Shown here in pieces: positions 8,607 to 41,600 of a stretch of DNA of 64,000 bases. This stretch comes from Iphione sp. A-MEVVRFRX5 (lineage: Eukaryota): the NCBI GenBank assembly GCA_976226885.1, contig OZ320317.1, positions 59,830,001-59,894,000 of the forward strand, in the 5' to 3' direction. The position numbers and the translations under genes are program-made. Numbering within the stretch: the stretch's first letter is position 1; each line of letters begins with the position of its first letter. The notes beneath the pieces were generated by a model. The model did not search any database. It worked only from the letters and a program-made list of their open reading frames with translations, and had not been told where the DNA came from.

Positions 8607-11600
8607 CTGCAAGCATCATGCGTGAAACACATATAATAAAGAGCAAACAAAGACAGCCCGCATTCATTGATGTATAAGCCCCCCCCCCCCCCCCGCTTTT
8701 TTATACTAGGCAATATTCCTTGAAATTTGGGGTCAGGGCTGAATGATATTCTCGCCCAAACTATTACTTAAAAAATTGTTATAGTTTTGCTGTATAATTT
8801 TCATCTCTTCCACAAGCCGTACAACACAAATCTTACTGTTACTCGGTAATATTTAACATAGTGAACAAGAGCCACAGTAACGTATAGATACGAAGGTGCA
8901 TAGGAATAAGCGAAGTCGTGTAATATTCACGTCGTAACCAGGGAAAAGAAAATAAAAAACTGTTGTCCCACAGTTCCTCGTGGCCAAATGAACTTCAACG
9001 TCCTATGATTGTTACACGGTTGGGTTATATTTTCTTAAATGGCCTGTCATTACGGATGTGGTCACTCCTACTGAAGATCGGTCCGTATTCTTTGCCTAAC
9101 AAATGTTTACCATGCGGTGTTGTTTTGTTCTTGGGGTATGGGGCGGCGGAAGATCTCTACCATGGGGTTTGCTAGGTGAGAACAGGTAGGTGGACTGGAC
9201 AGTTGGATTAACAGCAGTGCATGGCTGGAGAGAGGAAGGGGGAGGGGACTGGGGTTGGGGGGAGTAGGGGGTGGTTGGACTCCTGCTGGAAGGTGAGTGT
9301 GGTCGGGGATGGTTTCTCACCTGGGTGCTTGACGAGGCACTTGACCACGTACATACGGCCCTGATGCAGTACCCCAGGTCTGATGACGAGCGCCTGTTTG
9401 TCGATGCCCGTTGTGGTATTTCCCGGTGACAGGAGGACCTCACGCCGAAGCTGACTTACGATATGCGGCAGGGCACGCTGCTTTATCTTGGTGTCTGTGG
9501 CCGGGTCTACTCCGGGGCCGCGCTCTCCGGTGTTGGTGCCACCCTGGTCCGGCGACCCCACACCTTCAGCAAGAGAATACCCAGAAATAACAACTGTTAA
9601 ATTGAAGGAGTGATTTTCAGTTACAAATTCTCCGCTGTCGATAAAACCATGCATACAATCGTCGTACAAACATTCGAATGTTCGGCTATAATAAGTGTGT
9701 GCGTATTTATGTCGCCGCAACGATGAAAACAAAAGCTGGGTGTACTGGATATCCAGATGCACGTCGGGGTTATACCAGAACACAACATAAGATGTGAACA
9801 AATTCGACTTTAATTATCTCTCGATAATACTTTATATGTCCAGTTATAGAGCAGCAGCAATGAAACCCAAGGCGAACCCTGTATCTAACGCGGTAATGCC
9901 ATTAGTATATTAGTTAATTATAGACCTCCTCGACCCATGGTTGCTTCCTACACTGTGGACATCAACATAGACGAGGCGATGCAACTGACATCACAAATAA
10001 CACGGTCTGTCCGAATGACCGTAACCTGTGGTATATTACCAGCTAGAAATGGATGAGAAACTGTCTGCGGTAGCTCCTCCACGACCATATAGCACGCGAA
10101 GTAGACTGCTCAGGTTCACTGCACTATCTGGCTTGATAACCACTCCCAGGAAAGGGAAGCCAAAGCAAAGAATAATTTTTTTTTTTTGGGGGGGGGGAGG
10201 GGGGGTCACGACACATCGACTTTGCCTCGTTTCATACACGAAAGAATCATTTCTGACATGATTAAGTTAACTGTTTACAAATACAGAAATTGCGTGTCGG
10301 AGATATTCCTCGCTTTTTTAGGGTTCTTGATTCCTTGGGTGTAATTACTGACGAGCTAACATTTAAAACTAAACCCTTAAGTCCCATGCATAGCCCCACT
10401 TTCCCCATGCCCCACATACTTCTTAGGTAACTATTTCTTTTTTCGTTCATGAAGAAAAAGAGGGCGTCTTTCGATGTAATACGGGTAATGTTGCCGACAA
10501 AGAAAGGACTCTGGCTAATCAAAGCCGAAGGGCGGTGGGAGAATCTAGAAATTTACAGCTGTCGAGGTAGTATTGAAAATGCCATTCGTCAGAATTGATG
10601 ATGTCTGTTATCGTTAATAGTCCGACTTATTTGCTTACTTCCTAATATCGGTAGGATTCATGGATGATTATATGGGAGCTATTAAATTTCTGCAATCACT
10701 GCAATTCCCGAACTGATTGAAATTAGATTCTCTTATTTTGTCCTTCGTGCAGACAAGGTAGTGTTCCTTATTTGTGACTGTAATTTTGTAATTACCTAGT
10801 CCTATTATTAATGAAGTGATAGGCGAAGTTCAAATACCATACTAATAATTTTCACAATCTATCACTAATACACTCATAATGAAAATGTGTTAAAACTGAT
10901 CAATATGTAAATGTTTGGTTTCGAGAATTCGTTTTCTGGATATAAATTTGGGCATAATCTGACATTTCCACTACGGTTCGGTTGCATACTTCTTTTCTTG
11001 ACTGTGGCTACCTCATCTTAGTATTTCCTCTTTCGACCAATTCAGTGAACATTTTTATTACTTGTCTAGCCAATAGAGAAGGAGTTGTACATGCTGAAGC
11101 ATTACTACATGTATATACCTTCAGAATGGCACCAGCCAAAGCATATGTCTAATTCCACTGTAGCACCACAGTCCACCTGCACTCCTAACAAGGCCACTCC
11201 CTGCCCATGAAGACAGTCAGCATACCCACAGACCCAACTCAGTGGAGCATAGAGTCCCTGAAGGTAGGCCCCGTCACACTAAATCATTTAAGGGATAATA
11301 ATTCTACCTGTGTAAAACATTTGCAGATCTTTATTGGTGTAATATGACACTTCAGTCCATACTAACTGTCCTTGTGTAGCGGTATGTATTCGTCATGTAC
11401 ATATATCTGACAGAATGCACCACTGGGTATTGATGTCTTTGGGTACATTAGTTGTAACCATATAATCATGCCTAAGGTGTATGTGGTAATACATATTTGG
11501 GGACAAATAATAGTCTCCTACATATTTCTCTAGTTTAACAGGCCTTAACTTCTCCTCACATACTGCAGTTGATGTTTTGCTCTGACCACCATCATAGCAG

Positions 11601-14600
11601 TAATAGAATAATGGGGGAATGTGTGTTATTCTTATTTTAATGTGGCTACACAGTGAAGTAGTATATTGCTGAGAACACTGTGCCAAATGCATTCCCTGGT
11701 GAGCTTGCTAATGTCTCCATAGGACATGTATGATATTAACTGTTGGTCATGGTGCCGTGTAAGTTTACCACCCCAAATTACATCCCCTGAAAATGCAGCC
11801 AAGTTAGTGGAAAAAATAGACTAACAAATAGGATCAAAAGTTACCAAATTAGTAGATATTTAATTACCACCTGAGCAATAGTTATTACCAGAGGGGCAGA
11901 TCTGCACCAAGTGACCCAGTGTGTCAGGCTACAGAAAATCGACATAGCAGCCCGGCATTCACTGACCAGGTGCATCACGTCTGGAAAACCGTAGACTCAC
12001 TCCTATACGTTACGCACAAGTTTGGTCAAAGGCCACTGAATGAATATATACTAAATATAGAGGGTGAAAAAAGTATATTTCCTGACTTTTAATGATCGCA
12101 CCAGAGTTGGAGAGGAAAACTTGTCTCAAGTCCGTAACTTAAGGTGTCACCTAATTAAGGAGCGCCTTTTGATGCCAATTCCCCGCCTAGCAAAATATCA
12201 GAGTAAGACAGAATTATCACATCAATGGTGATCCAAGGCTTGGAATAAGTTTCTGCGTACCACACAGGGCTATAACTGCACCCGCAGCAAAACAAGCGTG
12301 GACAATCTAGTCAGTACATGTAGTTCTATACCTAATAATCATGACTTCATGGAATTTCACAAATAAATGAATGTAACAAGACAGAGTTCTTTTGGGGTCA
12401 ATAGGTCGCTTTAAGTAGGGGCATATCATACAACATTTTAAAGGTAAACAGCCCTACTTTATTTTGACATTATTGTTTTGTTTCCATTGAGGACCCTATG
12501 ACAACTAGGCTACGCTAAAGAGCCAATATTACACCAGAAAATTTAAACAAATTCACGGTATTATGCAAAATATGTATATGCATAGAAATGATTAAATATT
12601 GTTTTATAACTACCTGGAATTCGCCATAACTCATTTTTATATTCATGACCAGCATCAAACACATATGCACACACAATGAAAAAACAGGGATATTCTGTAC
12701 ACATTCACTGTTAAAATAAATAGGCACATACCAATTATCAATATTTAACTAATTAACGAAACATATTAAGAATCAGTAAAAAAGTGTTTGTATCTCATGA
12801 AAGCGATTGATGGTACAACATGACCAGCACCTGTCATATAACCTATTATGTTTTGGATGCCCTACTTATTTGCAGATGGCAGGGATAACGAGTATGGTCA
12901 AAGCATCAAATACTGGCTAAAGAAATTTAACTATAATGAAATGTAAGTCTGTCTGCACAATGTGCTTGACAAAACTAAGAAATATGGGTTACAACCTTTG
13001 CTACTTTATACCTGAGAGTTTAAATATTAAAATATGTTTGTCAGATCCTCCAAAGGACCTTACTACATAATTAAAGGCTTCAGTTCATATGAAGAAACTG
13101 TTAAATCTACCTAGGAGGAAAAAAAGGTTTCCAAATCTACAAAACCGAAAATGGTTTACAGGATACACTTTGAGGCGTCCATTAAGGTCTTCATAGTAAC
13201 AAAATCTCATGTGTATGTGTACATTTGGTTGTCTAGTCGCAATCCATCTCACTTTCCTTTGTTCTCTTATCAAAATACAATCACAATATTCAGACAGTTG
13301 TATCCGGCTTACCATCACATGATTCTTAATGCTGATTTTAATCATATACATAGCATATCATATGGCAGAACCCTACTTATTCGGCCTAATGTATCTTAAC
13401 TGTAACCGTGGTCTCTTTCATGAGGTGACACCTGAATGAGTGTTGCTTAAATGCACTGAAATAGCTGCTCTAATGATTGAGATGACCTTTAGGTGAGGTT
13501 CCACCATGCCTTGGAAAAGGTTGCAATTGATGGCATTCCTTTTTCATTTGTGTTATAGATCAGTTCATATGTACAATAATTGTTTTCACAGGAAGATTCA
13601 CTAGATCTGTAATTTTCTGATTTAAAAGCATGGAGTTTTAAGCATATTTAAAAATTTCCTTATTAAGGACCTTATTCAGAGTCTCAAATAATGTTTATTA
13701 GAAAAGGTCAAGGAATATTATAGGAAAACAAAATAAAGAAATGGAAAATACAGAAACACCCTGCCCAATGTTATATGAGACGTATACTCTAAAAATGCAT
13801 TTCACCTGATGGCCAATACGGGGTGTTGTTATCTGTCAGGTTTCAGGGCTCACCATAAAAAAACGTCTAGTACATGTTAAGAGAATAATTATAATGTGCA
13901 CAGTTTCTTAAGTATCACAGCTGGCTTAAAGATGATAAGTCAAACTATGAAGACTGCTTATAATAAAAGGACATACATCATAAAAATTGACAATAATTGC
14001 GTGCCTAGAAACAAATAAAATACAATTAGAACCGTGCATCTAAATTGGCATAGGAAATCCAATATTAGTTTTAATAAAAGAAGTCCACCAATTCATTGAG
14101 GGATTACAACCGGAACGCCAACACAATTAATTATATGGGTAATTTGGAAAATGAATCTTAGTGGAAATTCTTTAATTTGGATTAGAATCAGTAATTTTAG
14201 GGGAGTCATTTTCTGAAATAGTATTTGAGACCTAATTTCAGTGCTCTTTAATGAAGACAAATTTCCATCTGTTATTGCAAAGGCCACAAATGGGCCTACC
14301 TTTATCAACGTAATAATGTACATTATTTATGGGACGCAATTATATTACCAATACAGAGTGCCTCGCGTAGGGGTAGTAGTCCTTATTGAAAAACAATACT
14401 CGTTATAATCTGTTCGTTCGGTAGTTCTGTAATTGAAAGTATGGCAGACGAAGCATGGTTTCCCAAAGGAGTAGCAAATCCATAAATTTGAACGGTTATG
14501 AGATGCTGCATCATCAAGGCATTCAATATTACTTGTTGGAGAGCGGGAAAATATATGAATTGATTTAAGCATGTTTTGTGCATCATATGCCATTCATAGG

Positions 14601-17600
14601 TTTTCATGCTTCAATGGCAAATATCCATTTAAGGTTTGGAAGGTTGTATTTCCGATTTAGCATGAGTCAATTTTCGACGATTTAGCTCAAGCAAAATATT
14701 AACCGAGTGCCAACTTAAAATAAACTTCCAGTCAATATACCTACAGATGATTCTCATACCCGTAATACTATAAACTAGCTCTAGTCTGTATTTCTATCAA
14801 ATAATTAACCAAAGCTTTACAGTGCATACACCTAACATGGTCGTGCCTGTTTAACCTTTTGTGTTGAAGTTTTCGAGAGCACAATACCAGCCCTTAGAGT
14901 TATGTAGATAGCTCACCTCAAGGAAAGACCCAAAATCAGGACAGATCAGGAATCAGGATAACTGCGTCTCGAATTGTCTATTTGAAAATGGACTAGAAAT
15001 CAGGACAAGCTACAAATCAGAACAAATTATCATGGTGCCAGACCTCTCCTAAATTCTGATAATACAAAGGGTATTGGAGCACGCATGGTGTATTGGTGGT
15101 GCTACCTAACCTCGATGTGACAAAAGGAATATGTGTGAAGCCCAGATACTTTGATATACCTTTTGAATGAAAATATGTACCATATTTGGGACAATGTTTC
15201 ATGCCCCGTTAAAAGTAGGTTCCTTTGTTACTTAGAATGAGGAATGTCATACACCAAAGCCAGAAAACAAAGGCTTAACTTGCTGTTGTCCCAACAGATT
15301 GCTGGGGTAAGGAGTGTCCGTCAACTACTGCCGAGTCCGATAACATAAACTGATTATAAACGTGTATTACAAGAAAACTGTTGGATGTGGTAGACCTGTG
15401 TATATGTATTTGCTTTATGTTCCTTACAAGTGTCCTAACACCCAGCATAACTAGAGACAAAGATAGATTACTATCTATAACGCGTATGTTGAACATCATG
15501 TATGTACACGTGTGTGAGTTCATTTATGACTATTTTCTTTGGTTTGACATTCTACCTACATGTATTAGAATAGTTGTCGACAAAAGAATTATTTAAAGTG
15601 AACATATATTCACGGTGAGTCGCACCACGCTGGCCATAGTGATGTCTCCCATTTTTACCTCTATACAAGCACTTATATAGAAAGAAGTAATTAGGCAAAA
15701 TTGAAATATTAAGTAGTTCTTCAAACGTACATAAATACAGAAAGAATTTCAATCTTAAACGGAAACGCGTGGAAATATTTATAACATCGGTTGGACGAAC
15801 AGTCCGTTTCAAGGGAACCTGTCTGTATGCACACCATGGAATGAACGGCTGCGGGCGGATGTGGCATCGATTAAATCAATCGATCTAAGGCTGATCAATC
15901 ACTGAAGGTCGCAGCAACCGACATTAAATGTCCACATATTAATCAAATATTCGGCCACACTTCATGCGCTGGAAACTTTTATATTTCTGGCATTCCTTTG
16001 CAGTTCATTGTCCTTGTGCAAAAATCTAAGCACATTAAATCGGGACTTTTTGATGCGTTGGTCTTCTCTGGATATTCAAAAAGCTCTACGGATAGCGATC
16101 TTCCCAGAGGTATGCAATTAAGTATCGAATAAATCAATTCGTTTTCAGAAAACAATTTTTTCGCTCAATTTGTTTCTTCTGTTGTGCATCGTGTGGAGTG
16201 GCTGAAAGTCAGCCGTGTGACAATGCAGGGTAAAGTATGAATAGACCTGTACTTGTTGGTTCCACTTGGTGGATATGGTTACCCGGACACGCTGGTTGAC
16301 ACGAGTGAATGTATTTCTAGATCATGTTTCTAAACATAGCGGATGGTAGGTTAGGTGGAATGGAGGAGAGGTAGTAATCAATGTCTACAGGTAGTGAGTG
16401 GAAATCTCCTCAGAAAGTACGTTATAAGAATGGTCATTACTTGGCATACGGCCACTTAAGACAGCAACTCTTCTAGTGCTTCTATACGCTTTTAAAATGG
16501 TGTACAGGTGTAGGCTACTGTAACTGGAAAGTGGTTAAGTGTGGTCAGGTGCGCGTTCGTCCAGGCGTTCTGCATAGGCTTCGCGAAGGTGTGCTGTACG
16601 CGATGCCATCTATTTGACTGTTGATACTTGGGTGAAATCGTGTTATGTGTATGAATGTATTTATAAGGATTTTATGTGCGTCTGTATGGATTCGCAAATT
16701 TATGCATGGTGAAGCATTTCAACTGAACGACACCATTTAGATTGAACCATGCGGAGAGAACTGCAAGATGGTGTGTCGGGCTGAATTATCGAGGGAAGGG
16801 ACGTGAGGCGTTCTACACTTAATCCCCTCTCACACCTGATCGGCAAAGCTCATCAAAAGGTGGCAGCACACAGGTAAGCCGCTCCGATACCACCGCTCAT
16901 CCAGGTGTGCTAATAACCAGATCGATGGGCTCCAAGTCACACGGTCACGTGATCCTGGTTGTTATGTAACACTTGTTCTCCGTTGCTAAGGACCTCTGCC
17001 TGCGTAGGCGCTGGTTTTACTTCCGCTTACTGCCATTGGTAAACCGTTAATGCTCGCGCACGCGCACTCCGTTCCTGAGGTGTTTACTTCCGGTGTGCGC
17101 ATTTCCTGTAGGTGGCAGCACGGTAGCGCATGCGCACTGAAGACCACATCAAAGCGAAGGGGCCATGTCACCCATCATTGTCAGCCTAATGCAGATCTAT
17201 TTCGGGATTAAGTACGACCGTGTAGCCGGGCTGTTGGTTATTTATGTTCAATGAGGTGTAATTCCTTGATTTACCGCAACGCTGTAACGTGGCGGCCATA
17301 ATGACTCAGCACGTTTGGATCGACCTCGAAAATGCCACCAAGCGAATGGCAGCTGCAGTCAGCCGTGACGTCATAATTGACAAATAACCAACCGCAAGCA
17401 GCTGTTTGACATCCAGAAGAGTGATTTGCAAGAGCACAATGTCACTGGACGACAATGGGAAATCAAAGCGACTGAAGAGAAATGAGGCAACTGTGACACG
17501 TATGACCTCAAGTACGACGGCATAAATAAAACAATATTTATCTTGGCTATTCGATAGGAATAAAGCATAAACACTTTCATGAAATGTGGTTTACATGGAA

Positions 17601-20600
17601 TGAGTGAGATATGATTTTCATCCCGGTGTGACAAACACGACAGAGCCACGGAAATGTTCACGTAAGCTGGCTACTAGAATTTCTATTTCAGATGACGAAA
17701 CACTAAGCCAATAGTGTATGACTGCCAATAAGCGGACATAATCGCGTATACTAAGTATCGGTAGGTGTTACGGTATTTGATGAGGCAGCATTAATGCATC
17801 ACTAACATACCATAAGCGCTCTTTTAGAAACTAACACTTGGCATCTTTTATCTAATGCTCTCATAATCAATAAAAAAAATTACTGCTAATCGTGACAAAA
17901 CGTGCGACTGAAAAGATATAACACCAATTTCTCAGTTCAAAGGGAATGCAAGTGGCGAAACTAACAGAACTTGCTGCTACTTTTTCGAATGCAAAACGTG
18001 TCACCAAAATTATACTGGATCAGCCAAAGTGTAAACAGCCATTCAATTATCTTTGGAATAAAATAATATGATAAACATACTGATGACAGCCTGATGTTTC
18101 ACTTTGTCATATCATTAAGTACTGGTTCAAATATTATGTTTAGCTTGTCATTGTATGCGACTGGAGTCGTTACAAAATATGGTCATGTCGAATGTAGCGG
18201 TTGCCATTTCGTAGCCTGATATATATGTATGTCTCATGTTCTCCTGTTCCCTGTGACTAGTCACATCTCCCACCGCCCAACCTTTAACTTTGACAGATCG
18301 CTTGCTTGCGTGTGAGTCCTTTCTTGAGGCTTGTTGCCGCAGTTAAGGCTGCTTTAGATTGGCCTTGGCTTTGGTAGAGGAGGCCGGAGGGTGGGATGGA
18401 ATCAAAGGTTTCCACTGGCTCAAGAAGACCGAAGTGTGAAGCAACAGACTGCACACTGATGGCTGCTATGTGGCCTGAGATGCCTTCATCGAAGAAGACT
18501 GATGGGATTTGTACCATAGGAAATGAGGGGCCTTAGTCATGGGAGGCAGCCGGAGGAGGAATCACTGTGACTGCAAGTGGCTAATGGTTCCTACTTCAAG
18601 GCTTTTCACATCCTCCACTCTGGTAGGAACCGCGTGATGGTATTACAAGGTTTTATTATTGCATAATTCCAATTGTTTACTGGCACTACAAATCAAGTTC
18701 GATATGCGGGATATGACCCCTTATCTCATTCATGAATACGAAAGAACCGCCAGATATCAAAACTTGCTGTACTGTAGTGTTATGACACATATGCCTCCAA
18801 CAAATATAGTACATGTATATATTTAGAACACGCCATCACCTTATGAGATGTTATCCACACATTTGGAAGTAGCCAGAGGAATTCTGCCCCAGCATCACAC
18901 AGAACTAACAATGCAAAGGTGTCACTCACATAAAAGGGGGAAATACCGAAAATAATAATAATGATAATGATGATGATCAATTTTATTTCCAGTTTATGAA
19001 AATGAATTCGTACATGCAAATTACTGGTAAGACTGTTGTCAACGAGAGAACATTCAGTGCGAATAATCAACTTAGAATTCCACTGTTAAAGCTTTAAAAT
19101 GGCTGAATGTTAATTTTGAAAATAAGCTTCTCTTTACCCATATTCTTTCAAGGCATGCAGCGTTGATCTCACCTGTTCAAACTGCCTTTACCATACACTG
19201 CTTACAAATCGTCAATATCTAATTCGGTTTTTGCAAGCACCCAAACTCTGTTCGATTTTCCTCATATTCGTGGTTCCAACAGTAAATAGAAGACAAATGA
19301 TTCTGTTTGGCTATCTAGATAGAATCAGATAGTCACAAATTTGAAGGGCTAGGCATTCCTAGGTTACCCCGAACAAGGCTTAGGAATCTGCTTGACAGAT
19401 ACAAAAGAAAGGTGTGTGCAGTAAGGAACGAAAAAGAGACAAGGAGGCGCAGAAGAACTTCGGGAGAGCACTAGGCGACAGCAAACCATTCAAATATCCC
19501 AAGTACAAACGTAGTCTCATTGAGCAAACCTAACCGCAAACCGACATATTTATAACAATGTATCTGATGACGACGTCTCTGACTATCCGCAATATTCAGT
19601 TCCGTCAATTAAAGCGATTGTTGATTGAGAGGGAATGGGCAAGTTAAAGGTTGTGACTTACATACTCAAATGCAAGGCACACGCAGAACCACATATTTCT
19701 TAGAACGCAACACTGGCTTAAACTGGTTATCCCAGTTTTACCTGTGATTACAGCTGCTCATGTAGCTGCCTATCCGTTCGAACTCTATATTCTGCAGGAC
19801 GCATAAAGAATCTTTACCTTGTGGTCTCGGGCTAGAGCGCTAGGTAAACAGGGAAGAATGCTTAGCATTTAGCAGGATATCAGCCACTTCTGGCTTCTTT
19901 CAAGCCGAGAATGCATCCTATCTAGGGCATGGTTCATAACGCTGGGAGAAGAGTGGGGAAAGTCGACATATAGCTCGGCCAACAGAGGTGAACGTTTTAA
20001 TTTCCGGTCCAAGTCTAACGCACGGAACTATATCTGCAGCGGAGTAAGGACGGTCCTGCTCGTTCATATATGATCGCGAATTAAGCAAAGCACTCCAAGC
20101 AGTCATTGTCGACCTTCAATTATATTTACTTTGAAAAGGGCACATTCGATAGGCCTATTGGAAGGAATGAAAACGCATATCGAATGTCTTTCTGGAAAGC
20201 ACCAAGACGACATACAAATTCGACGGGCAATTATTAGATTAACTATCAAATTTCTTAGAATTGACAATTATCATGCTTTTTCGACGCTGAAAGAACCGCA
20301 GAGTGATTAGCCAGTAGTTTCCCTCCGTTTGGTGCTCCTCACAGAATTGGCCAATCAGCTTACAGTGTCTAGACGTTGTTTAGCGGAGTTTACTTCCTCG
20401 CCCGAAGTCCCCTTACTCAATCCCAACTGCAATCTCCGGCCCGGCATGCTGCAAGCACAATCCTACCACGACAGCGATCTCGGGTGGTGATGTACCGATG
20501 GCGCGCGACTGTTTGCACATTGTTGAGACTGTGCCTGCCTCCGTGTTGGTCGCTGTTTTCTGGATCCCAGCAATGGCCATCTGAAGCTGGCTGTGGGTTA

Positions 20601-23600
20601 CGCTTTTGGTAAAAGAAAGCTTTGGGAATGGAGAGAGACGGTGGGGAGTGGGATTTCGAGCAAGGGGGTGCTATTGTATATGCGTGGGAGCTTGTCATTC
20701 GTTCTGAAAGGAACATAGACGGTTAGGTCAATTTACACCGGTCTTGGCGGTCACTACTGGGCACACCTGCACACTCTCGTCCGCAACCCGCTGCGACATT
20801 TCCCACCATCAGACTATCCGCCGCCACCTAGCTTATATCCTCCTACCCCCAATGTACCACCCACCCATCGCCCACCCTTCAAGAAGTGCCCTCCCCATCC
20901 GTATTCCTGCACTTATCCACAGGCGGGCAGGCCACGCGGCGCGTCCAATATCGAATATTGAGCATGTCCCACGTCAAACTTCGACAGGGTGCTTGCTTGG
21001 CCGTTGCCTGGCAACCACAGGAAGTGTACACAGGCGACGCCTAGCGCGCCAGAGCTCGGAATAACACGGCCTGATGGGGACGACTGCGCAGCCGCCCGGC
21101 GCACACAGGAAGAAGCCCACCGCGCATTCTGATACGCATGCGCATCTATTTTGGCAGGATGGAGGGAGGGGGTGCCCGTGGTTGGGCGACTGGCGTCCGG
21201 CTCAGTGGCGCCCCCTGGACGTGGACCTCTGTTTGCAGCATATTACTCTAGTGGCGCCCCGGCCATGTTTGCGCCGCTCGGCAACCGCCAGCGGCCCCAT
21301 ACCGCCTTCTAATATCGCTCACGTTCTTTGACAATAACGCCAATTTCATCTATCAAAATCAGATAATTGGGGGCAGAGGCGGCGGTAGCTGTTCCCCCAA
21401 CCTCTCCGATGGCTTGATGTCGACCAGTGCATCCGTGGGCTGAAGCAGCTTCTCCTTGTCGTTGCCTCCCTGCCCAGCAGAACGTGGATACCTTGTTAAT
21501 CACGACCGCGGCGCCAATATTTGCCTTTAATGCGGAATGAATGTGACGAGTTTGTTGACCGATGCAACCGTGGCTTGAAGCTGGCCGCCACTTTTATTTA
21601 AACGCACCCGTGCCGACGTGATCCCGACTGAGCTGGCAAGAAGGAAGGAGAGAAGGCGGCAAAGGCATCGCCTTGCTCTTCAAACTTTCGAGTCAGAAGT
21701 CCTGTAAGCACTCGCCTTCCTTTCCTTAAAAAGGCTCGATATGAAACGTTTTAGAAAATCATGCATCGCACCTGCTGCGTGAATGCATCAGTGTTATGAT
21801 TTGCCTGTTCGGAATGGAAATATCTATTTTAAGGAAGGAGACACAAGAACAATCTCGTCAACTACTTCTGTTTACATTCAGCCCGGAACTATGGCTGTTT
21901 GATTCGGTTCATTTGGATTAATTCCTTTGTTAAACGAAAGCTAAGTACTGCCAGATAACTTGTATTTCCCTAAAATAAAATACATGTATGGACACCACAG
22001 CAATGTAATCATTCTTATATATTCTTACTATGATATAATAAACGGTTCTGATAACGCGGGCAATATCCATCTTTGGGGCCCTTTTTCGACTAGCTCAATG
22101 AAGGAAATCTAATTTCGACATTAACTCGGTGTATTGTTCTATTGCCCGATAATAGTATCCCTTTTGCAGGCTAGTCTTGTTGTAAATGTAAGCATGTGAT
22201 GTGATGGAACACCGCACCATGATGTCAGAACCTTCCAAAGTAAGACTACCCATTGTTTTCAGTTTAAGGCCAAGAGCTACAGGTGGCTTAAAAATAAATA
22301 GACAAGCAATTTTCTTATAACTTCACAGATTTATTCTATGCACTATTTGTAATTCAAATATGAAAAAAGTTGGGCTTTCAATGCTCATTTATCCAGCAGT
22401 GATCATCAAAGTGATGCTCCTCTTACCATTGAAGGCAATGGCAGAAGAGTAAAAAAGTGGTCATTCTGGAGACAATTCATATCATAAGTTCAAAACCTGA
22501 CAAACAATTTCTGTCAAAAATTATATTTAGCCTTAAATATATATATTATTCAAGATAAAAACAAAAATATATGGTTTCAAGGTTACTTTCTATACAGAAA
22601 TGGACCTGAAAAGTGTACAACTAGAAATTTTTGTAATAGGCTGAATGGCACAGAATTCATCAATTTTGACACGTTTTATGCTGTTAGTCTAAAACATGAC
22701 AAGAGGGAGAGAGGGGAGGGAAGGAAGGAGGGAGAGAGAGGAAGGGAGGGAGGGAGGAGAGAGGGAGGTAGAGAGACACACAGAGGCAGAGACAGAGACA
22801 GAGCATACTGTAGGTCTAGTTTCAACTTCATTCACCAACACAGCCAAAAACCAGTTTCTTGAATTAAGAACATTTTTCTTAAAATAAGAAATATTCTTTT
22901 GTGCATATTAGTTCATAAAATTGCCACTTGGCGCCTGCCGCTCTCGCCCTTAATTTAAAAATCAATCGAGCATGCTTACACGTGTTATTCACGGAATATC
23001 CGTAGATTCGCGTATTTGAAATTAATTCTGTGTAAAGAATATTGTGCGTTGTTCACCTTAATTTTAAACTTCAACATACAAATATAAAAATTATCCTGTA
23101 CAGATTTATGTTTAAATTCGTTTTGCGGTGTGCGGCTGATAGGTATATGTGCAGAGTGATCGATAGTGACATCAAGAGACATTTAGATCTCTGCCCAGAC
23201 ATTTTCTGGATGTACACGCTGATCATAAGACCCTGTCTATCAAATTTCCAAAGACGGTCTGGGTTTGTATACAGAATGTCTGATGTGGATCTCTTCTAAA
23301 ATGCATCATCGCACCATCATAGTCTTAGATTTGAAGGAACACGTAATGAGAACAACACAAATTGGGCGAGTAAACTGAACTGTTATACATTGTATATGGA
23401 ACTTCAATCTTGCTACACATTTGATAATCGTTTGGTTGTGTGTGTGGGGGGGGGGACTGGTACACTGCCGTCGTACTGTTAAGTCATTTTGAGTAAAAAT
23501 ATGTTAACATAATTATGTCTAAAGTCCTAAACGTAAGAATTAATGGGAGAGGGTGCCAAATAGTTCTGAACATACGTGCGTGGATATCTTGGACCTTTAT

Positions 23601-29600: not shown

Positions 29601-32600
29601 GGATGACCGCATGTGTCAAGGGAGCCGTGGTTGAAGCTCTAAAAGACACGACGGCCTGCTGTTTTCCTTTAATTATCACTCTCTAGAGACAAATACATGT
29701 TTTCAATATTTGTGACGGTAGCCATCAAACCAGGGTGTGATTACCATCTCTTCTGTGCGGCATAGTCTTTCCATACTCACGAAACAGTGGGAACAATTAC
29801 GTAGTTCATCCTACTAATGAGGCAACCGCAAGAACAATACTAGGGAATAAATGTTCAACGAGTACCACTAAATAATATTCCCTCGGTGATGGACCTAATG
29901 TTGGTGCTGTTTGCTACGATCGTCAGCCAGTCAGCACGTCTTGGGCTGAAAGCTTGCCTGTATTAGCAGTCTGTCCACGAAGGGCTGGCTGGAAATGGAG
30001 AGAGGCGGGAGGAGAAGAATGGCTGGATGAGTCCCAGGAGGACATTTCACCACTGGTCTAGTTAGATCCCTTGAGTATTTCGAGAACAAGGGCAACAGCA
30101 GCCTGAGAAAGGGGCGAATAATTGAAGCCTATGCAACATGAGGTAGCCCTTCCACCGTGGACATTGCTTTATCTTAATGCTTGACAAACTCGATCATCTT
30201 TTAATGTCATAGTGCCAGTGTAAGGTCGTGGTCATTGCACGAAGAAAACTTATCTTGAAGATCTTTACCATAGTGGCCGAAAAATAACCACAAAAGGGGG
30301 GGTGATTTCATAATACTAATGGGGATCTATTCATTCTCATGGTCTAAGGTTTGGGCAATACTATTTTAGTACGTGTAAAACCAACATCAAAACGTTATGA
30401 TCAATCCGGATCTTCAACACAGTTCAGGTACTTAGATGGCAGTCGGATGACTCAACTGTTGTGCTTCCCTTAGAAAAGACCCTTAAACACAAGGATACAG
30501 ATATTGAATATTATTATCCCCCCCCCACTTTTTAACGGTATTTATTAAACCGATTCTAGAAAAGAAAAACCTAAATTTGGTGTGAAATCTTACACCTTTA
30601 TTATAAGACCACTTTTAGAAGGAATTATGTGTACGTGCTCTGTACGATATTAATGTTTCAATTCTAAAGGTAATCAAGTGTATATGTACATTGTACATAT
30701 ATGTATGTACATGTATGTACACGTATACAGTGTACATGTATGTATATACATGTATATGTATACATGTACATGTATAGACATACATGTACGTATGTCAAAA
30801 GGTTGATGTGGCTAGATCTAACCAACAAGAATTGCTACCAGGTTCTGAGGAGCCTAAAACAGTTACCTTCCTTTAAATACTTGTTTATGTATCAGTTGCT
30901 AGATGACAAGTGGTCAGCAGTGAATCCTAGCTCCATTCTGATTGGTGAAAATCAAAGCATTGTATATCTAAAGGAGGGGGCATAAAGGTTGATCCTGGTT
31001 TCGAAATCCATCTCATCAGGCAAAGTCAAGGTGTAAATTAAGCTCAGGACATCATCTGATAAAATTTTTTTTTACATGTATGTATGTATGTATGTATGTA
31101 TGTATGTGTGGAGGTTGAGGCATATCAGTCAAAATTGTACAGTTTTTAATGGAGGTTGAGGTATATTGGTCAAAATTGTGCTGTTTTTCATTGAGCCTGA
31201 GACATATCGGTAGAAATTATGTGTTTTTTATGCAAATGATATGGAAATTAGAAAATATTTCACTCCATCTGTCATATGACAGACAGTGTCTGTCCTGCTG
31301 AAAAGGTCCATCTCTCTGTCCTACTGGTCCATGGATGTCCGTGGTCTAGAAAAAAAATTAGCATTGTTCGTTTTTGGTCCCCTGACCATGGACTTTGGAC
31401 CATGCACCTGTACACATGGAACACCCTCTATTAAAATCAGTGAGTTATTTCTTTCCCGGAGCACGGAGCATGCTCCGGAGGTAATCTAAGTAAACAAGGA
31501 ACCAGGCCTAAGGGCCGGGTTCCATACCTGCGTTGGCATCTATAAGGTATCCATTGGTATCCATGTGCGTTGGCACGCGTTTCACGTGTTTCTCTCACGC
31601 AACCTCACGGATAGGGGTCATTTGGCCTTGCATTGAGGTGTGTGAAATCTATTGTGATCTATGAAAAGGGGTAAATATGATTTTAAGAGCCATGAAAATG
31701 ATGGGAAAATGATGAGAAAGGACAAATATGATTCTAAAAGCCACGAAACTGCTGGGGAAAATGAAGAAAAGGGATGAATGTGATTCTAAACGCCATGAAA
31801 CTGAAGGGGAAAATGATGAAAAAAAGATGAATATGATGCTGAAAGTCACAAAAATTATGGGAAATGGGATGGAAAAGGACACTTAACAGTTTCACCTGAT
31901 TCAAAGACCGTCTCCTGTATACTGCTGTGCGTTTGGTGTCCGTTTGCGTTAAATTATCGGTCAGAGACCATTTATGAACTACTGGACACCAAACAGATAC
32001 CAACGGATACCAACACACACGAAAATATTGGGTACCTTTCACTGAATTCAACTTGACCATAAAAAACGGATAGGAATAGATGGGAAACGGGCGGGAATGC
32101 ACACGGACATCAACGCATGTAAGAAAACCGGTCTTAACTTTTAAGGACGGTCTTGTTGCAACCAGTCGCGAAAATCTTTGCCATACCAAGAATGGTTTAT
32201 ATGAAGAGATGGTTTTATTGCTCATTAAGTCTCTCATTTAGCGAGGCTATGGCAAGGTAAAAGTTATCAAATGTTACACTATGTAGCAAACAGAAATTGC
32301 CTACCGTGTATCAAAGTGATTACATTTACAGACACATGTATGTATGCACGTTATACAAGGTCACACCAAGAAATCCATATAGAGAGGTCCGGCAGTTCTC
32401 GACTAAATATAAGCTGCCACCAAAGCCATAATACATCCTAGCATAATACAAACTGGCCTCATTGCATGCCATTAACTGTTCCTCACTGTCGACAGAAATA
32501 CCTACAATTACCATCTATTTCGGTAATTTCGTGCCATGGGTCTATGAATTATCCGCGATACTAGGCATCACTAACATCAGTTCTACTGGCTCTCATTGAC

Positions 32601-35600
32601 GTATTATGCTGAAGGATAAAAAAAGTAACCAGATGTATCAAGTCTATTTGATCAGTGTTTCTAATTCCTTTATATCATATGTACCACTAAATCCTTTGGT
32701 TGCTTACCCAAAGCATGGCAGTTGGCGGGGCTTCATTATATGAGTACTCCTTAAAACAATGTTTGTATGCACAATTGTTTATATGCGGGGTGCATTTACT
32801 CTCCTGTTCCTTACTATTCATTAGTCGTAATTGCTCGTGTAAGACCGTCCATGCTTTCTCCGATGGAGCTGACAGCTATGTGTAGCCAAGTACCCTTTAA
32901 TGCCAAGCTGATGTCTCTTGTGTTACAGAGTCGGTTCGTGTGTATAGGCGCCGAGTGCAGTGCCTTTTAGCAGCATGCAATTACGCCTCGGAGCCGAGGC
33001 GTTTAGCGCCCACGGGTATATGTGTCTGTCGGTGGGCATACGTACCTTGTGAGCTGCCACTGCCTGCTCCTCGCCGGCTGCCGTGCCCCTCCGTCGGGCC
33101 TGGGTCCCTGGCGCTTCCCCCGCCGCCGCCACCGCTGGGCTGGCCGCCCTCGTGAGGTTCGGCGGCGCCCGGTTCGCGGCCGCTCCCCCCGCTGCTGTGC
33201 CGGCTACCGCTGTGGCCCTCCGATATTGAACCCCGCTGGGCTGATGACATCGGAGACGGGGAGGGGGTCAGACAGAGACAGAAAAGAACATGATCAAAGT
33301 CTGTACGTTTCGTTGGATGACGGGAGGCTGTGGTGTCAACGTTACTGTACAGGTAACGAGTCTGAGGGGGGGGGGGGCTGCGACTGCCACCGCCGGCGTG
33401 GATGGCCTCCTGAGTCCTTGATGGTCATAGAGGACGCAGGCGATGGGGCGCGGGGATGAGGCGAGGAGCGTCGGGGCTTTGCCATCCAGCTTGTTACAAC
33501 CGCGGCCTGCCGAAGGGCTTGTGTTAAAATTTAACGATTGCAAGTTGTAATCATTGTCATATCATGCCAGTAACGGCAGCACCGGGGTCATACCACAGCT
33601 AAGGGCACACGGACAATGGATAGCTGCATACAAGCAAAAGGGACATCACATCCAAAATTCATTCAGTACCAAAGGCAAATCAGATAAAACGGTTGCGTTA
33701 TCGTATTTGCTACACCGAAACCGCTCATTATTTACAAAACTGTTCTCATGGGACAATCTTTATCAGATAACCTCAAAGAAGACTAATTACAACTTGGACG
33801 TTTCTCAGAATACAATCTAAATATGAATGCGCTACACATACTAGACGCTTGCTGAAAAATATTCCAAGTACATGATATTTCGAAGTACCGAAAACAGTTC
33901 GACATCTGCCCTGTAATTTATCAATAGTTAAAAGCTTTTAGATTAGAGTGAAAATAAAGACGATTACGTGGTGAAGACGCCATACTCTTATACTACTTAC
34001 ACCACTTTCACTAGAATAACCACAGTGAAAGGTTTTCAAATATCCTGACGCTTTATCTGAAAGTGATTGATATTTTACATTTACTTTGATTCTGTTAGCA
34101 TTAACGTGAGAGCAACAATCCTGAAATCAATACTTTCATACAGAACCGCTTGGTCTACACGGTTAAAAATAGCTCAAACATTATGAGATCAACGTACCTG
34201 TGGCTTCCTCGAGGTTAAAGAAGCCGGAGTCTGAAAAGTGACGAGAATACCATTAGCAACAAGCAGTATTTTAGCACATGTACACATAAAATATTACGGC
34301 TTCTATAAAGACATACAAAAGTTTAGAATACATCATTTAACAACTTCAGCACTTTCCGAAACGCAAGACTAAACTGTAAGTCTACACGTGGAAGGGTTCT
34401 GATGCTATTGAAGCAATATGGAGGAGTGGGAGACTTCTGGTGTATACATAGTTGGTATGTCATGAAGGTGCTGTTTACCATTATACGCTTAAATGGTACC
34501 CTTCTAAACAAGCCGGGAATGAAGGTGCTTCAGACTGGAAAACGTTCTACTGTGATGATTGAACTATCATCGGTACACAGAGAAGAGAGGTAATGAGAAA
34601 CAGGGTAGTTACAAATATGCCACCCAAATCTATGGGAGGCGCATCGAAGATATCTACTCAGGCACATTATATGGTGAGAAAAGCTATCTTCCAAATACAC
34701 GGAGAAAATTAACCTCTACCAGCTGCGATAACCCTATTAAATTGAAAGAGATTGGAGGTCAGAGATAGGTGTAAGTTCGTATTAAAATGAGTACGTGAAC
34801 TATTCCGCTAAAACCCATTTTGACTCCTTTGGACAAGTCAGGCCAACACTGAAGACAAAGAAGTAACACTAGCCACACAACGACTATGCTATTTAACTAT
34901 CTATTAACCTGATGCACTAATTGTGGTGATTGATTAGGATTTGATTACATTACGTCCCTGTAAGGTGTGACTATGAGACTAGAGTCCAGCGCCGGACAGG
35001 GCCATCCTTAATTGTAAATGGAATTAGCTATGCTGGCCTAATCACATTACGCTAATTACTCCCGCAATTACATTCGAATGCTCAAAAAGATAACGTGTTG
35101 AGTAAATAAGAATGCTGCATACGCAACGCTAACGAAATTTATGGACAGTCCACTGGGCGATATAAATAGATTTATTATATTCCATTACAGGCATAGTAAT
35201 TTATCGACATGATGTGCGGACATACGTGTGACACTGCTTTTATGCATATCAATGAAGGACGAGACATCGCCCTGTAGGTCTGTTGTGTGCATACTGCTTA
35301 AAAGATCTCCCGCTCTCCACGTAGTCTGCCTGTACATGTACTAGTATTTGACTCATGCGCGCAGTGTCTCGGAAGAAGAAGGGAAAATAAAGGTGAAAAC
35401 TGTAATTAAAAGATCTGATGAATCTGCGTTAAGATGAACCTAATAGAAAAATGAACTAACAATATCGCGCCAGAAAAAAAGTGCAAAATATGACCGGACT
35501 GTTACAGAGCATTATAAACACCATCCGACCTATATGTTGGTGTGAATATTAATACCTCCCCTGTGGTTAATCTGCCCCTTGTGCACCGAGAATAACCATT

Positions 35601-38600
35601 TTAAAGGAGGAAGAATAGTAGTATTAGGCTACGACGTACATTAGTGTGTTGGTTGTACAGAGAGGATATCTCATTTCTTTAATCTACGTGTAGCACTTAC
35701 CCTCATTTACCCCTTCTTTCGGATTAAGTAGAAGACTATAGTGTTCTGAACGGAAGGGGTATACCAAGCGTTTAAATGAGCAACATGTGCGAAATGGAAG
35801 TATCATAGGAACACCATCACCCATCACAAAATGTAGGCATCCATATATATATACGTACATATTTATACGTATATATACATTTGTAATACTTAAGCGGGTA
35901 TGTTACTAGACATTTATTCTGATTTGATACTGTTAATAAAAGAAAACGAGCTCCTGGCATTGAAAAAACTGTTAAGCAATTTTCCCCGCCAAACAAAAAT
36001 GAGACTGCAATTTCACAGAAGTATCAAAACCAAACGACAGGGGGATATTTACACCATTCGTTTTTACGTCCTTAAGGTTATGCTATGAGCTTCAGGCTCG
36101 TAATGATGGCCGAATATGCGTCCAGGATAAACCGACATTAGAGTTTTAATACTTTATTTAGGGATAATTCTCTTTCATGGGGGAAGAGTTCTACCTTCTC
36201 TACCTTCGGATGGCTGTTGTCCAAGCAGGTCGGGTGGAGGCCCCGGCGCGGGACTCACCGACGTCGTTGTCTTGGCTGTCGTGGACAAGGTGTTTCCAAT
36301 GTCGTCTGCTGATAACAAAGAAACACAATCATTGGTACTGGTGTCATGGATCTAGTGCTCAGCCTTACGGTGGGCAGCCATTAGGGCAGTTTCAGGAATA
36401 TTCAGGGTATTCTTAAGGACAAGAGTGTGTGTGAGTGTGTGCACATGGCTGGCAGTAGCACCGTCTTGTATCATCCTTCCCGCTGCAGTCAGGTGATGAT
36501 CACATGACATTGAGTGGTTTCATTACGTTCTGCTACGGGGAAGTGAGTGTCCCCACACAAAACACGCATGCGATCGAATTGATCGCTACCCGTTTCAACG
36601 ATGACCATGTTCTTATGCTCACCATCCTTCGAGCTACCATCTTTGAGGCATGTGAAACCGTGTACGCTTGGGCTCCAATACTGAGATGAAAATAGCCTTC
36701 TACGATGGTAATAACTGCCCAGAAGATGTTGTGAGCAACTCAACTACATATCACATTACATGAGAGAAAGCATTTCCCCTCCAGACATTAGCCTTGAGGC
36801 ATCACAGTCATATTTGATCTTATTTTCTATTGATGTAACATATGAAGTCACGTGGCGTCTTACTGAAAGGTCACTTTGAAAGATCCCAATCCCAAAGTTG
36901 AGAAGAAAACTATTTGACATACTGATACTTTCCTTTGTGTTCTGCAGAAAAGCAACAAGGGGATATAAGAAATATTTAGCACAACCACTATCGAGTAATA
37001 AAAGTGAAAAGATCATATCTTTTTATTATTAAAACAAACCGCTCTCCTCTGTGCCCCCGTAGCCACGATCTTGCAAAAATTTACGTCTTTCTGAGGATCT
37101 ACCTGACGTTGATGAAGTCACGCTGACGTTAGACTGGCTGATGGTGTTGCTGTTGGGATATGTGCTGCCCTCTGCAGTGTCATTGCCTTGTTTGAAGTTC
37201 TCGGGAGGGTTGTGCGTCGTGCCGTCCGCATTCACACATTTGTGCGAGTCATAAAGCACTGGAGATCGGGAATCAAAGACGACAGAAGTAAATCAAAATC
37301 TCTTACACGGGTGGATCAACCATGTACTCTAATAAACAGTTGGTACCATATACATTCACATTGCGAAAAGCCCATCTAACCGACGTAAAAGACATCCCTT
37401 TATATTACTACCGTACATCTAGTTGCAATTCTCCTCCTGTAATCATTGTGAAAAATATGAGTCTTCTAATGTATCACCTCCGAAATGTATGCACATCAGG
37501 GATCCTGACGCCGAACTATGAAAACGGCGGGCTGTTCTTCAAGTAGATGGTGGAATTGAGAGTGTACATCTCATTCATATATCGAATGTCTGGCTACGAC
37601 GGCTAAAATCAACATAAGCTGTTCCAGATAACCTAAGTATTTATTCGTCTGAACGTTCTTGATATAATATGCTTTCATTAGTTATACTTGCACATCGTTG
37701 CGACTATAAGAGATTCAGACAGAGTATACGAAGAGTAGCATTATATGACGTAAGATACCCTATTAGATACGCGAACCATAAACGTCTTTAATAAGTCCTC
37801 CTGGGCTTAAAGAGCGATTATTATCCAGCTCATTATTTCCATCAGAATGAAACCGAACCATCAATTCGTTGTTGGCCTGGACGGTCTCAGGAGTAGTCCT
37901 CCACCAAGTCCCAGGGCCTCCTCCCTCTGCATCAACGCTGCATTCCCTACATGGCGGCGGAGGCGGCAGGGGGAGTGGGCCACATGGGAGGGTGTGGGGC
38001 CCAATTTCAAGGTGTTTACTTGCGACAATGGGCACGCACGCCGTGCACGACAGCGGATCCACAGAATCAACAACACGACTGCCGCTCCCATACCGATCCG
38101 TCCACAGTGACTGGGTGAAGTCGGCCCCATCTCCCCTTAGCCCAGGCCGACCACTACCACCTCTCGGCTCCCCAGAAACACCAGTGTTTGGGCAGACCAT
38201 TCCATGGCGATGGCTGCGGGAGTCAACCAGGAATCCAGGGTGATCACCGTCTGAAAGCCACCCGAACCTTCAATAACCCGAAACCCAGCCAGGAAAACAC
38301 CCACAGCGCTCCATTAAAATCGCAAACAAATGGGATTCATTATCTAAATGAAAACGAATCCGTCTGCGCTGATTTGAGTTTTTTTGGCCATCATTTAACC
38401 GTTGATAGCGTCTACTATCATAACCTAGTTCACTTAAGAGACGAGGACTGTTATTTCTCAACAGGAATAATGGCGGCAAAATATTTCAAATAAGGAAACA
38501 ATGGAAGATGGACAGAAGACGATGTAAGGAGGGAAAAATTAGAGCGGGAATGACAGTTGATGAAGTAGGACTGATGAAAAGAGGACCATAGCCAGCTTGA

Positions 38601-41600
38601 CAGACTGGAGCAGGAGGAGATATGGGGAGTGAGAGATAATCAATCAAAATAAAAGTAGGCAGGGTTCTCAGATGATGGCATGCCGCGAAGAACGTGTGCT
38701 AATTAAACAATAGCTGTGTAATAAAGCTGTCTTTCCGTGTGCTTGGATAAAGACAGTGGGTGACACGCCCGGTCTGTAATAAACGTAGTGCTACTAGTGG
38801 CTACTGACCCTCTATTAAGTGTAGCGAGGAAAAAAGAACTCTTTTATTTTGACCATACTGTGAAAAGACAGGAGGATCATCTATAAGGTCATGATCACAT
38901 GGTACTGTGCTGCACGCTGTTATTATCTATCACTAATTATCCCTTTAACATCTGGTAGCGTATTCATTAATGACCAACATTTACATTGTCGGAGAACCAT
39001 ATGGATTTAATGTACAGGCCAATATAAAACTAGGTCACAAGGAAATGCAATGGTGACGGGTAGAAATAATCCATGTAAGACTTTACTGGTTTGGAGGGGT
39101 ATTTCTCTTGGTAAAGAGGATGTATGGTAGCAGTAGCCTTTCTGCTTTATTTAGAATAGACTGGTCGACAGCTGATTAAACAACCAAATAGTTCCTGACC
39201 TCAATAGCAACGCTGACCTTGAGCGTTCTTCAACACGGAAGGAGAAGGTTTATACGAAGCACAGAATCCTGACTAATTTTCCAACATACTTTTACTTCCA
39301 TAGGCACTTGTGAATCTACCTACCTTCTGACTTCCCCCAATTCAAACGAGAATTTGTTTTACAGACTCTAAAATGTAGAATGGTTTTAAACTGTCAGGTC
39401 GGAAAATAAATATATCAGAATTGTGAAACAGGTAACCTTACCGGCAGGCAGATTATCTTCGCCGTGGTCCAGTTTGAAGAGGGTCCACTTGAATTGTACG
39501 CCACTGGCTTGGTAGCCTGGTGGGAGCTGTGCTTCGACCACGAACCGCTGGTCTGAATTTATGATGCCATCCTCACACTCGGCACACAAGAGGGTCACAC
39601 TGAATAAAACAAATCTGATTGTGAACATGGACTCGCACAAAACGGGGCACTGCAGCTGCTGATACGTGACGCAAGAGTATTGATCCGGCATACAGAAGCA
39701 CTTGTACCAACATTAAGCGAAAAAACCACCAAAAGACACGATGGATCGTCAATAGATTCAAAAATATTTTCATGGAAAAAGGGGGCCTTTTGGGAGTTAT
39801 TCTGAACCACGAGAATTGATATCAATGTCATCCATTCTTTGTATTATGTTCACAGAACCTATACATCAGTCAACGGTCACTTACTCTATGGTTTCCCGTT
39901 TAGTCATTTCGACCACCTGAGTGGCGGCCTTAGAGTCAGGAAGGCCCGGGCGCGAGATGGTCAGATTGAAGACGAATTCATCGTACGTGCTGTTGAATGT
40001 GTTTCCTAGCAGCCGCAGAACCGCCGACTTCGTGGCCAATCTCACTTCAGAGCTGTTGGCGAAGCATGACGTTCCTGGCTTGATCAGTTTGTAGCAAATC
40101 CAGTTGAACCTGTAACAAAAAACAACAACAAATCATAACACTGCCAGTTTAGTCCAGCGTGTCCTTCTCCTTTGCTGTGGTCTTGTTAACATCAAGTAGA
40201 ACCTGTTTATTGAATAACAAACACGAAAAATACAATGTATTCTGATTAGAACTTCCGCTGCTAAATGCAATCTAAGTGTAAACAGCTGGACTGATACATC
40301 AATTCAGAATAATCCTGCTAGAGAAGTTTGAGAGACGGCGATCTGAGTTTGCTAGGAACAAGACAACTGCCGACCCACACAGCTGAAGCTACCGCTAAAT
40401 CTATGCCCAAACCAACTCATGCTATAACCAGCCGACCCATTCACACCTGAAGACGTCGTCTCTAAACCCTCGCATACACGGCTTTATTTCATTGGAATGA
40501 TTTCGAAAGGGATAGTTTCGGATATGAAGTGTTCGACAATTAAGTTCTGTACGCAGATATATATATATATAATAACAGACAAAATTACAATTCTCTAAGG
40601 GCTGATTTCGTCATCTCTCTTCTCAGTTACAAAAGGGTAAACATAAATCTAGTATATCAAGAAAAGCTATTATTTTTAATTTGAGGCAAAGTGAACGTTG
40701 TGAAGTACAACTTATTTTCTTCTCTGAGTACTTCCAACTTAAGGTCGCACTCCGGAATTCCTGAGTATACATTAGATTTATATAAATTGTACATGCACGT
40801 TAAAAAATATTTTCCCAGAATATCAGCCTCAATTCAGGGAAATTAATTCCTCAAACCAAGAACACAGAGATAATCTAAGTGATGGGCACCACATACGAAC
40901 CAAAAATAATCCCCTGCGGTCCAGATCTATGATCCTCAATCTCATTTTTCTTGACTTACTTCAATACCTTTCCGTGGCTAATGAAGTGAGACGCTTACGT
41001 GATGTCAGTGGCGTTTGGGTAGTCTGGGTCGTGTGAGGCTGAGGCATCCATGACAACCGTATCAGTCCGCTGCACAGTGCGCATCAGACCACCCTTGATG
41101 ACGGCCAGTAGAGGCGCCGGCTTCACCTGAACACTGATAGAGCGCTCTGTATGCACCGACGTCCCCTTCATCTCCACCTACAAGATGCATCTCCATCATC
41201 ACTGCTCACAGTCACCACATAAAGCCGTCACCTCCACAGGTACATGCAGTAGCTTTCAATCTGGAGGTGACCAAGCAATAAACACACAGGCAGGTCATAT
41301 TCACCTGAAAACCATCAGTGTAGTATCCAGTATTACACAGGCCCACCACACGCAGTATTCACCCTGGAGTGGTTACTACCAATAGACCTTGTGCTCTTCC
41401 TGGAGTCATCACTGGTGAACTTCATGAAAGAAGCGACCACCTATACGTGTGGCATTCATCCAATGCTATCACTACTGATACAGTAAAGTACTGGTGGACA
41501 TCTGAAAGTCATCACTAATGGGCTATCATTCTTCACCTATTTAATCACCTCGGAGTGCCTATCACTAACACACTATGCAGTTCATTACTCAAATAATTTC

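Follow-up and report, generated by a model that had tools for sequence, protein, structure and literature searches.

A PKD1L1-type gene of Iphione sp. probably carries a low-complexity loop in its REJ module, encoded by three small exons

Gene content of the window

We analysed a stretch of 64,000 nucleotides (nt) of Iphione sp. A-MEVVRFRX5 DNA from contig OZ320317.1 (hereafter the window), which contains no N and covers only part of a gene whose REJ module is probably interrupted by a low-complexity insert. Pfam searches of the exon translations located PKD (PF00801, E 6e-15) at 49323-48718 and REJ (PF02010, E 2.6e-13) at 41177-40998, with weaker REJ matches at 42309-41836 and 9813-9211; tandem PKD (Ig-like) repeats lie immediately upstream of the REJ module. 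When exon 42309-41836 was used as the query in an exhaustive HMMER search, 74 proteins were retrieved, and most of the long matches that were looked up are named polycystin-1-like protein 1 (PKD1L1) by NCBI or UniProt. The proteins so named represent Tubulanus, Acanthaster, Lingula, Anneissia, Haliotis, Elysia, Saccoglossus, lampreys, a caecilian, frogs, eels, sturgeon, bichir, platypus, opossum, and naked mole-rat. One fish PKD1 stood far down the match list.

A collinear chain of exons on the minus strand was laid out by tblastn of seven homologues, and the folded exons share ~30-45% identity with their PKD1L1 counterparts. The neighbouring exons were derived by chaining open frames that have homology support and compatible phases. 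The remainder of the gene, with the GPS/GAIN cleavage motif, PLAT/LH2 domain, and 11-TM channel-like C-terminal part expected of a PKD1L1 protein, would follow exon 1295-1166 and thus fall beyond the start of the window. As in the window, PKD repeats are followed by REJ in Tubulanus polymorphus (XP_074659507.1), Lingula anatina (XP_023931767.1), Geotrypetes seraphini (XP_033786352.1), and the partial protein of Elysia marginata. Judging from the best hits and the shared insert, the window gene is most likely an invertebrate PKD1L1 orthologue, with PKD1L1 and not PKD1, PKDREJ, or PKD1L2/3 as its closest relatives. The result for the window is mainly a corrected gene model for a further member of the known PKD1L1 family. 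In the determination of the vertebrate left-right axis, PKD1L1 is the polycystin partner of PKD2 (PMC4894641).

A long insert at one position of the REJ module

The two peptides between which the initial annotation placed a G/S/P/T-rich interruption map to 39470-39493 and 9382-9438 in minus-strand orientation, and both exons that contain them match PKD1L1 of a nemertean, a brachiopod, a starfish, molluscs, and vertebrates. The upstream exon (acceptor ...ttattcag, donor G/gtaagg) carries the CxxC and W motifs and has tblastn matches to PKD1L1 of several species. In the downstream exon, the first 27 codons are G/S/T/P-rich and the remainder is a conserved REJ strand region (T-T-T-G ... R-P-G-V-L), which matches Tubulanus and Lingula PKD1L1 in tblastn (E 1e-9) and gives a weak Pfam REJ match at profile positions 263-309. 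The blocks that flank the insert in the homologues are the same as those in the window, and their G/S/T/P-rich insert occupies the position identical to that of the predicted insert of the window gene.

We measured the insert in each homologue between the matches of the two flanking exons. In the ten well-anchored homologues, 135-557 residues lie between the anchors, with a G/S/T/P fraction of 0.30-0.55, and most of these inserts contain exactly one Cys. This Cys is present in all nine homologues that could be aligned there, 18-23 residues past a conserved Trp, and the invertebrate motif is usually C-x-x-x-[DN]-G. By eye, the parts follow each other in a like order across the inserts, beginning with the Cys piece and continuing with an S/T/P-rich stretch, one or more E-G/A motifs, and a G/S-rich tail. 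The hydrophobic-x-E-G/A motifs number two in most vertebrates, three in Haliotis, six in Limulus, and ~25 heptads in Acanthaster. The Acanthaster insert, ~557 residues long, contains roughly 25 tandem G-S-F-E-E-A-G-type heptads at residues ~2065-2290, which look like an amplified form of the motif found once or twice elsewhere.

An R-x-K/R-R site of the proprotein convertase type occurs shortly past the first L-E-E-G-type motif in the PKD1L1 inserts of the nemertean (Tubulanus), the brachiopod (Lingula), lamprey, caecilian, frog, and eel, whereas no canonical R-x-K/R-R was seen in the candidate exons of the window.

The initial annotation expected an insert at a comparable REJ position in vertebrate PKD1L1 and none in PKD1. 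The former was observed in caecilian, frogs, sturgeon, eel, lamprey, and naked mole-rat, and the latter holds for the single PKD1 compared, that of the pipefish Syngnathus. PKD1 contains the same REJ blocks as PKD1L1; in the pipefish protein, the W motif can be made out, as can the T-G...L-x-L-x-P strand after it, and only ~20 residues separate the two, with no low-complexity insert. Published REJ spans in teleosts, ~440-470 residues in Pkd1 and ~580 residues in Pkd1l1, i.e., ~120 residues longer (PMC5318412), are consistent with the lack of the insert in PKD1. The REJ module of PKD1 starts with four predicted FNIII-like subdomains (PMC3677617), and, judging from the coordinates of the Pfam REJ profile, the insert would fall roughly in the third of them.

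A literature search found no paper that describes the PKD1L1 REJ insert or cleavage within it. A long, probably disordered insert is fixed at one point of REJ in PKD1L1 from nemerteans to mammals, which offers a simple diagnostic for the PKD1L1 clade and defines a region in which glycosylation, cleavage, or tethering may be sought in the poorly understood PKD1L1 ectodomain.

Candidate exons of the insert

The initial annotation proposed exons of 219, 105, 195, and possibly 231 nt between the flanking exons, and all four exist as open AG..GT phase 1-1 stretches (Table 1). The 219-nt exon places its Cys 22 residues past the conserved Trp, within the range of the homologues. Its peptide matches Elysia PKD1L1 in BLASTP (E 0.006) over residues 946-1016, next to the equivalent of the upstream flanking exon, which ends at residue 940. 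Against a profile built from 24 homologue inserts, this exon is the top match among 2691 six-frame segments, covering profile positions 10-74. The Cys motif taken as a regular expression occurs six times in the six-frame translation of the window and has no significance alone.

In summed similarity to seven inserts, the 195-nt exon heads a list of 799 segments. It also ranks first of 57,849 16-mers scored with a position-specific scoring matrix of the E-G motif (window excluded), with near-ties that come from microsatellites. With composition correction off, it is again first against the insert profile (E 2e-05), aligned over 33253-33059 to profile positions 174-227, which are collinear with those of the 219-nt exon. 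Its region has the highest GC content of all islands in the interval, and a short-motif hidden Markov model with composition correction did not single the exon out. The 105-nt exon ranks fifth of the 799 segments in summed similarity and fourth against the insert profile.

Like the confirmed exons, the candidates stand out as GC islands, with GC fractions of 0.52-0.76 against 0.39-0.51 in their flanks. Searches of the candidate exons against Pfam gave no match reaching the curated score cut-off, and a search for further copies in the same genome returned only self-matches for candidate exons and control intron pieces alike. A protein word search with exon 9563-9321 for transcript-derived junction fragments yielded no candidates, and the same search with Elysia residues 860-1168 returned the query only. 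With these three exons, the insert would comprise 197 residues with a G/S/T/P fraction of 0.52 and one Cys, which fits the family. The exons with homology support speak for the claim that a G/S/T/P-rich stretch, of ~200 residues, interrupts the REJ module.

The 231-nt exon fared differently, since neither splice sites, nor profile, nor spacing supports it. We rejected it as part of the main transcript: its acceptor and donor are weak, it is absent from the top profile matches, and its inclusion would lengthen the Trp-to-Cys distance from 22 to ~99 residues and add three Cys where most well-anchored homologues have one. A GC-rich island (~0.61 GC) between the upstream REJ exon and the first insert exon holds a 168-codon open frame at 37766-38269 on the minus strand; its splice sites are weak, and neither Pfam nor the homologues gave a match.

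We consider it probable that the gene is a PKD1L1 orthologue with the REJ loop typical of its clade, ~200 residues long, encoded by three small exons beside one long intron and serving as a constitutive, flexible spacer.

Splice boundaries and exon phases

Donors and acceptors were scored with a rough matrix, whose values are usable as a ranking only. If stretches of 90-300 nt that are open, AG..GT, and phase 1-1 are counted, the 29.9 kilobases (kb) between the flanking exons yield 454 on the minus strand and 304 on the plus strand, with similar numbers for the other phases. Because so many arise by chance, the phase 1-1 character of the proposed exons is weak evidence alone.

The acceptor of the first insert exon at 37258 is good, and that of the 105-nt exon, a tandem cag/cag, is very good. 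The donor of the 105-nt exon is ambiguous, lying either at 36204 (phase 1, weak) or at the strong internal site 36259 (TCG/gtgagt, phase 0). For the 195-nt exon, the donor at 33046 is good, and the acceptor may be 33240 in phase 1 or one of two phase-0 sites, 33235 and 33361. The statement that every insert exon is phase 1-1 therefore stands only in part: a 1-1 chain exists, whereas strict symmetry is not established, as a 1>0/0>1 chain scores better.

In that chain, which we regard as possible although less than likely, the same insert would be encoded by asymmetric exons, 36308-36260 (1>0) being joined to 33235-33046 or 33361-33046 (0>1), and single exons could not be skipped freely. It draws on the donor at 36259, whose score of 4.6 is within the top 0.7% of GT sites (36204 has 1.0), and on the acceptor at 33361, whose score of 4.3 is within the top 0.5% (33240 has 2.4). 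In addition, a G at +5 is found in all eight confirmed donors of the gene and is missing at 36204. However, these scores come from the rough matrix, the profile alignment of the 195-nt region begins at 33253 and not upstream, and no homologue insert resembles the stretch upstream of 33253, which is hydrophobic and contains two Cys.

Predicted disorder and proposed role of the loop

The structure of a homologue, the Elysia PKD1L1 fragment, was modelled with AlphaFold2 from a 35-sequence alignment. The predicted local distance difference test (pLDDT) values are below 50 for residues 940-1107, which correspond to the insert including the Cys piece. In contrast, they are 85-93 for residues 1111-1160, which form four strands, and the PKD and REJ parts are also confident. 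The model fits a disordered loop that would leave and re-enter the folded subdomain, and the disorder prediction suggested by the initial annotation thus gave, for the Elysia homologue, a disordered insert between confidently folded flanks.

Taken together, these results suggest that a long loop of biased composition, placed between two adjacent strands in an FNIII-like part of REJ, is a shared trait of PKD1L1-type proteins throughout Bilateria. The loop would run from a short piece with one Cys, through an S/T/P-rich (mucin-like) stretch and hydrophobic-x-E-G/A motif(s), often followed by basic residues, to a G/S-rich tail. In the window it would be encoded near 37258-37040, 36308-36204, and 33240-33046, together with the first 27 codons of exon 9563-9321. 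We infer that its most likely role is that of a constitutive and flexible spacer, probably glycosylated, which projects from a folded REJ subdomain. In so far as its exons do share phase-1 symmetry, this is what is usually seen when exons for extracellular linkers enter a phase-1 intron, and it is no evidence of regulated skipping.

Several observations weigh against this interpretation. The donor of the first insert exon at 37040 is poor, scoring below every confirmed donor, and the donors of this exon are weak at every candidate position; of the alternative phase-1 donors at 37103, 37085, and 37067, the first two are better than 37040. Composition-adjusted BLASTP found no similarity between the 105-nt and 195-nt exons and the homologues, and the shuffle z-scores of the exon peptides against the homologue inserts are mostly below 3. 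The similarity of these two exons to the homologues is thus essentially compositional, and similarity in sequence order is weak except for the Cys piece. The DNA at ~33.0-33.4 kb is GC-rich and open in all frames. Furthermore, the conserved Cys motif lies within the low-confidence part of the Elysia model, and constitutive use is read from automatic annotations of other species, which are weak evidence.

Alternative splicing and other readings of the insert

The initial annotation proposed that each insert exon could be skipped without a frameshift. This holds for the candidates as bounded in Table 1, because they and exon 39599-39442 all end in G, and every combination of skipped candidates stays in frame without a stop. 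From this it derived a mechanosensor ectodomain with a loop whose length could be tuned by the combinatorial inclusion or skipping of independent phase 1-1 cassette exons, a model that we consider improbable. Such a loop would agree with the phase-1 compatibility of all candidates and both flanking junctions, the tandem NAGNAG-type acceptor of the 105-nt exon, the weak donors of the 219-nt and 105-nt exons, which are typical of alternative exons, and the four-fold variation of insert length between species. However, the phase 1-1 exons had been selected from the hundreds expected by chance, and the asymmetric boundaries score better. In addition, we compared annotated isoform pairs of Anneissia, Geotrypetes (two), Haliotis asinina, Haliotis rubra, Leptobrachium (two), and Syngnathus PKD1, and all of their differences lie outside the insert. 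Seven pairs from five species are counted here, six of them for PKD1L1-type genes and one for a fish PKD1. The first insert exon also carries the Cys that is conserved throughout the family, and its skipping is unlikely to be neutral. Most likely, the insert is an ordinary feature of the PKD1L1 family, and its reading as a splice-tunable loop is currently unsupported.

The cell-surface protein CADM1 offers a comparison, in which small exons for a mucin-like stalk encode an S/T-rich extracellular linker as in the proposed cassette arrangement. The alternative use of the CADM1 exons is documented (PMC5385562), whereas the splice-tunable loop of the window is a proposal. Moreover, the PKD1L1 loop lies inside a folded module and not next to the membrane.

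The PKD1L1 REJ loop might also be more than a spacer, namely an ancient regulatory element shared across Bilateria and marked by conserved short motifs, although we give this little credence. These motifs may comprise the single Cys, the hydrophobic-x-E-G repeats (from one to ~25 depending on the species), and the R-x-K/R-R of many lineages. If this were true, loop cleavage or ligand binding, and possibly exon skipping, could control whether the left-right flow sensor has its PKD-repeat ectodomain released or tethered.

Lastly, it is highly improbable that the insert is absent from this species, with one 29.9 kb intron between 39442 and 9563 and the candidates being chance open frames in GC-rich islands. 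In favour of this reading, the direct splice is in frame (junction codon GGT), low-complexity matches arise easily by chance, and the scores of some plus-strand segments come close to those of the candidates. Against it, only 27 residues without a Cys would be left where the ten well-anchored homologues have at least 135 and the nine aligned ones all carry the Cys, the match of the 219-nt exon to Elysia falls where it is expected, and the candidates rank 1, 3, and 5 of the 799 segments on the correct strand and in the correct order.

Flanking exons, long intron, and minor features

The preferred gene model, with the insert in three small exons, is listed in Table 1 together with the neighbouring exons. 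As the initial annotation had stated, the exons of the folded domains are of mixed phase (2>2, 2>0, 0>2, 1>0, and 0>1).

Table 1. Exons and intron of the PKD1L1-type gene around the REJ insert (window positions).
Feature	Position	Strand	Length	Phase	Remarks
Neighbouring exon	42980-42738	-		2>2	
Neighbouring exon	42256-41893	-		2>0	
Neighbouring exon	41177-40999	-		0>2	
Neighbouring exon	40109-39885	-		2>2	
REJ exon upstream of insert	39599-39442	-	158 nt	2>1	Confirmed
'Possible' exon of the initial annotation	38250-38020	-	231 nt		Not supported
First insert exon	37258-37040	-	219 nt		K-C-V-N-A-D-G, then N/S/T-rich; well supported
Second insert exon, probable	36308-36204	-	105 nt		T/P-rich; weakly supported
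Third insert exon	33240-33046	-	195 nt		S/G-rich, begins I-S-E-G...R; moderately supported
Intron	9564-33045	-	23.5 kb		Bulk of the 30 kb spread
Exon downstream of insert	9563-9321	-	243 nt	1>1	Confirmed
Neighbouring exon	8606-8467	-		1>0	
Neighbouring exon	1295-1166	-		0>1	

The exon upstream of the insert keeps the first CxxC (C-A-E-C), and the second pair is replaced by ...E-A-Q-L-P-P-G-Y-Q-A-S-G. In the PKD1L1 homologues, the W motif is preceded by two CxxC pairs, whereas the window gene lacks the second, and therefore the disulfide pattern of its REJ subdomain may differ from that of the homologues.

The insert exons had been described as spread over 30 kb. The flanking exons do lie at this distance, whereas most of the spread is one long intron, in which no homology-supported segment was found. 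No tRNA or Rfam match was obtained at 9564-32999, and the large intronic open reading frames gave no Pfam match reaching the curated score cut-off. At 20400-21300, the long intron has its second strongest GC island (up to 0.66 GC in 200 nt), with open frames on both strands. Pfam, tRNA, and Rfam searches of this island gave no match, and it may represent a CpG island, an old repeat, or an unannotated exon. It includes a C-R-N-T-D-G match at 20911 on the minus strand, which is at chance level. A 52/103-nt tandem repeat with four copies lies at 31661-31879 in the same intron, and a simple-repeat tract reading (S-V-R-P)n / (G-R-E-G)n lies at 62800-63200 of the window, near an upstream PKD exon.

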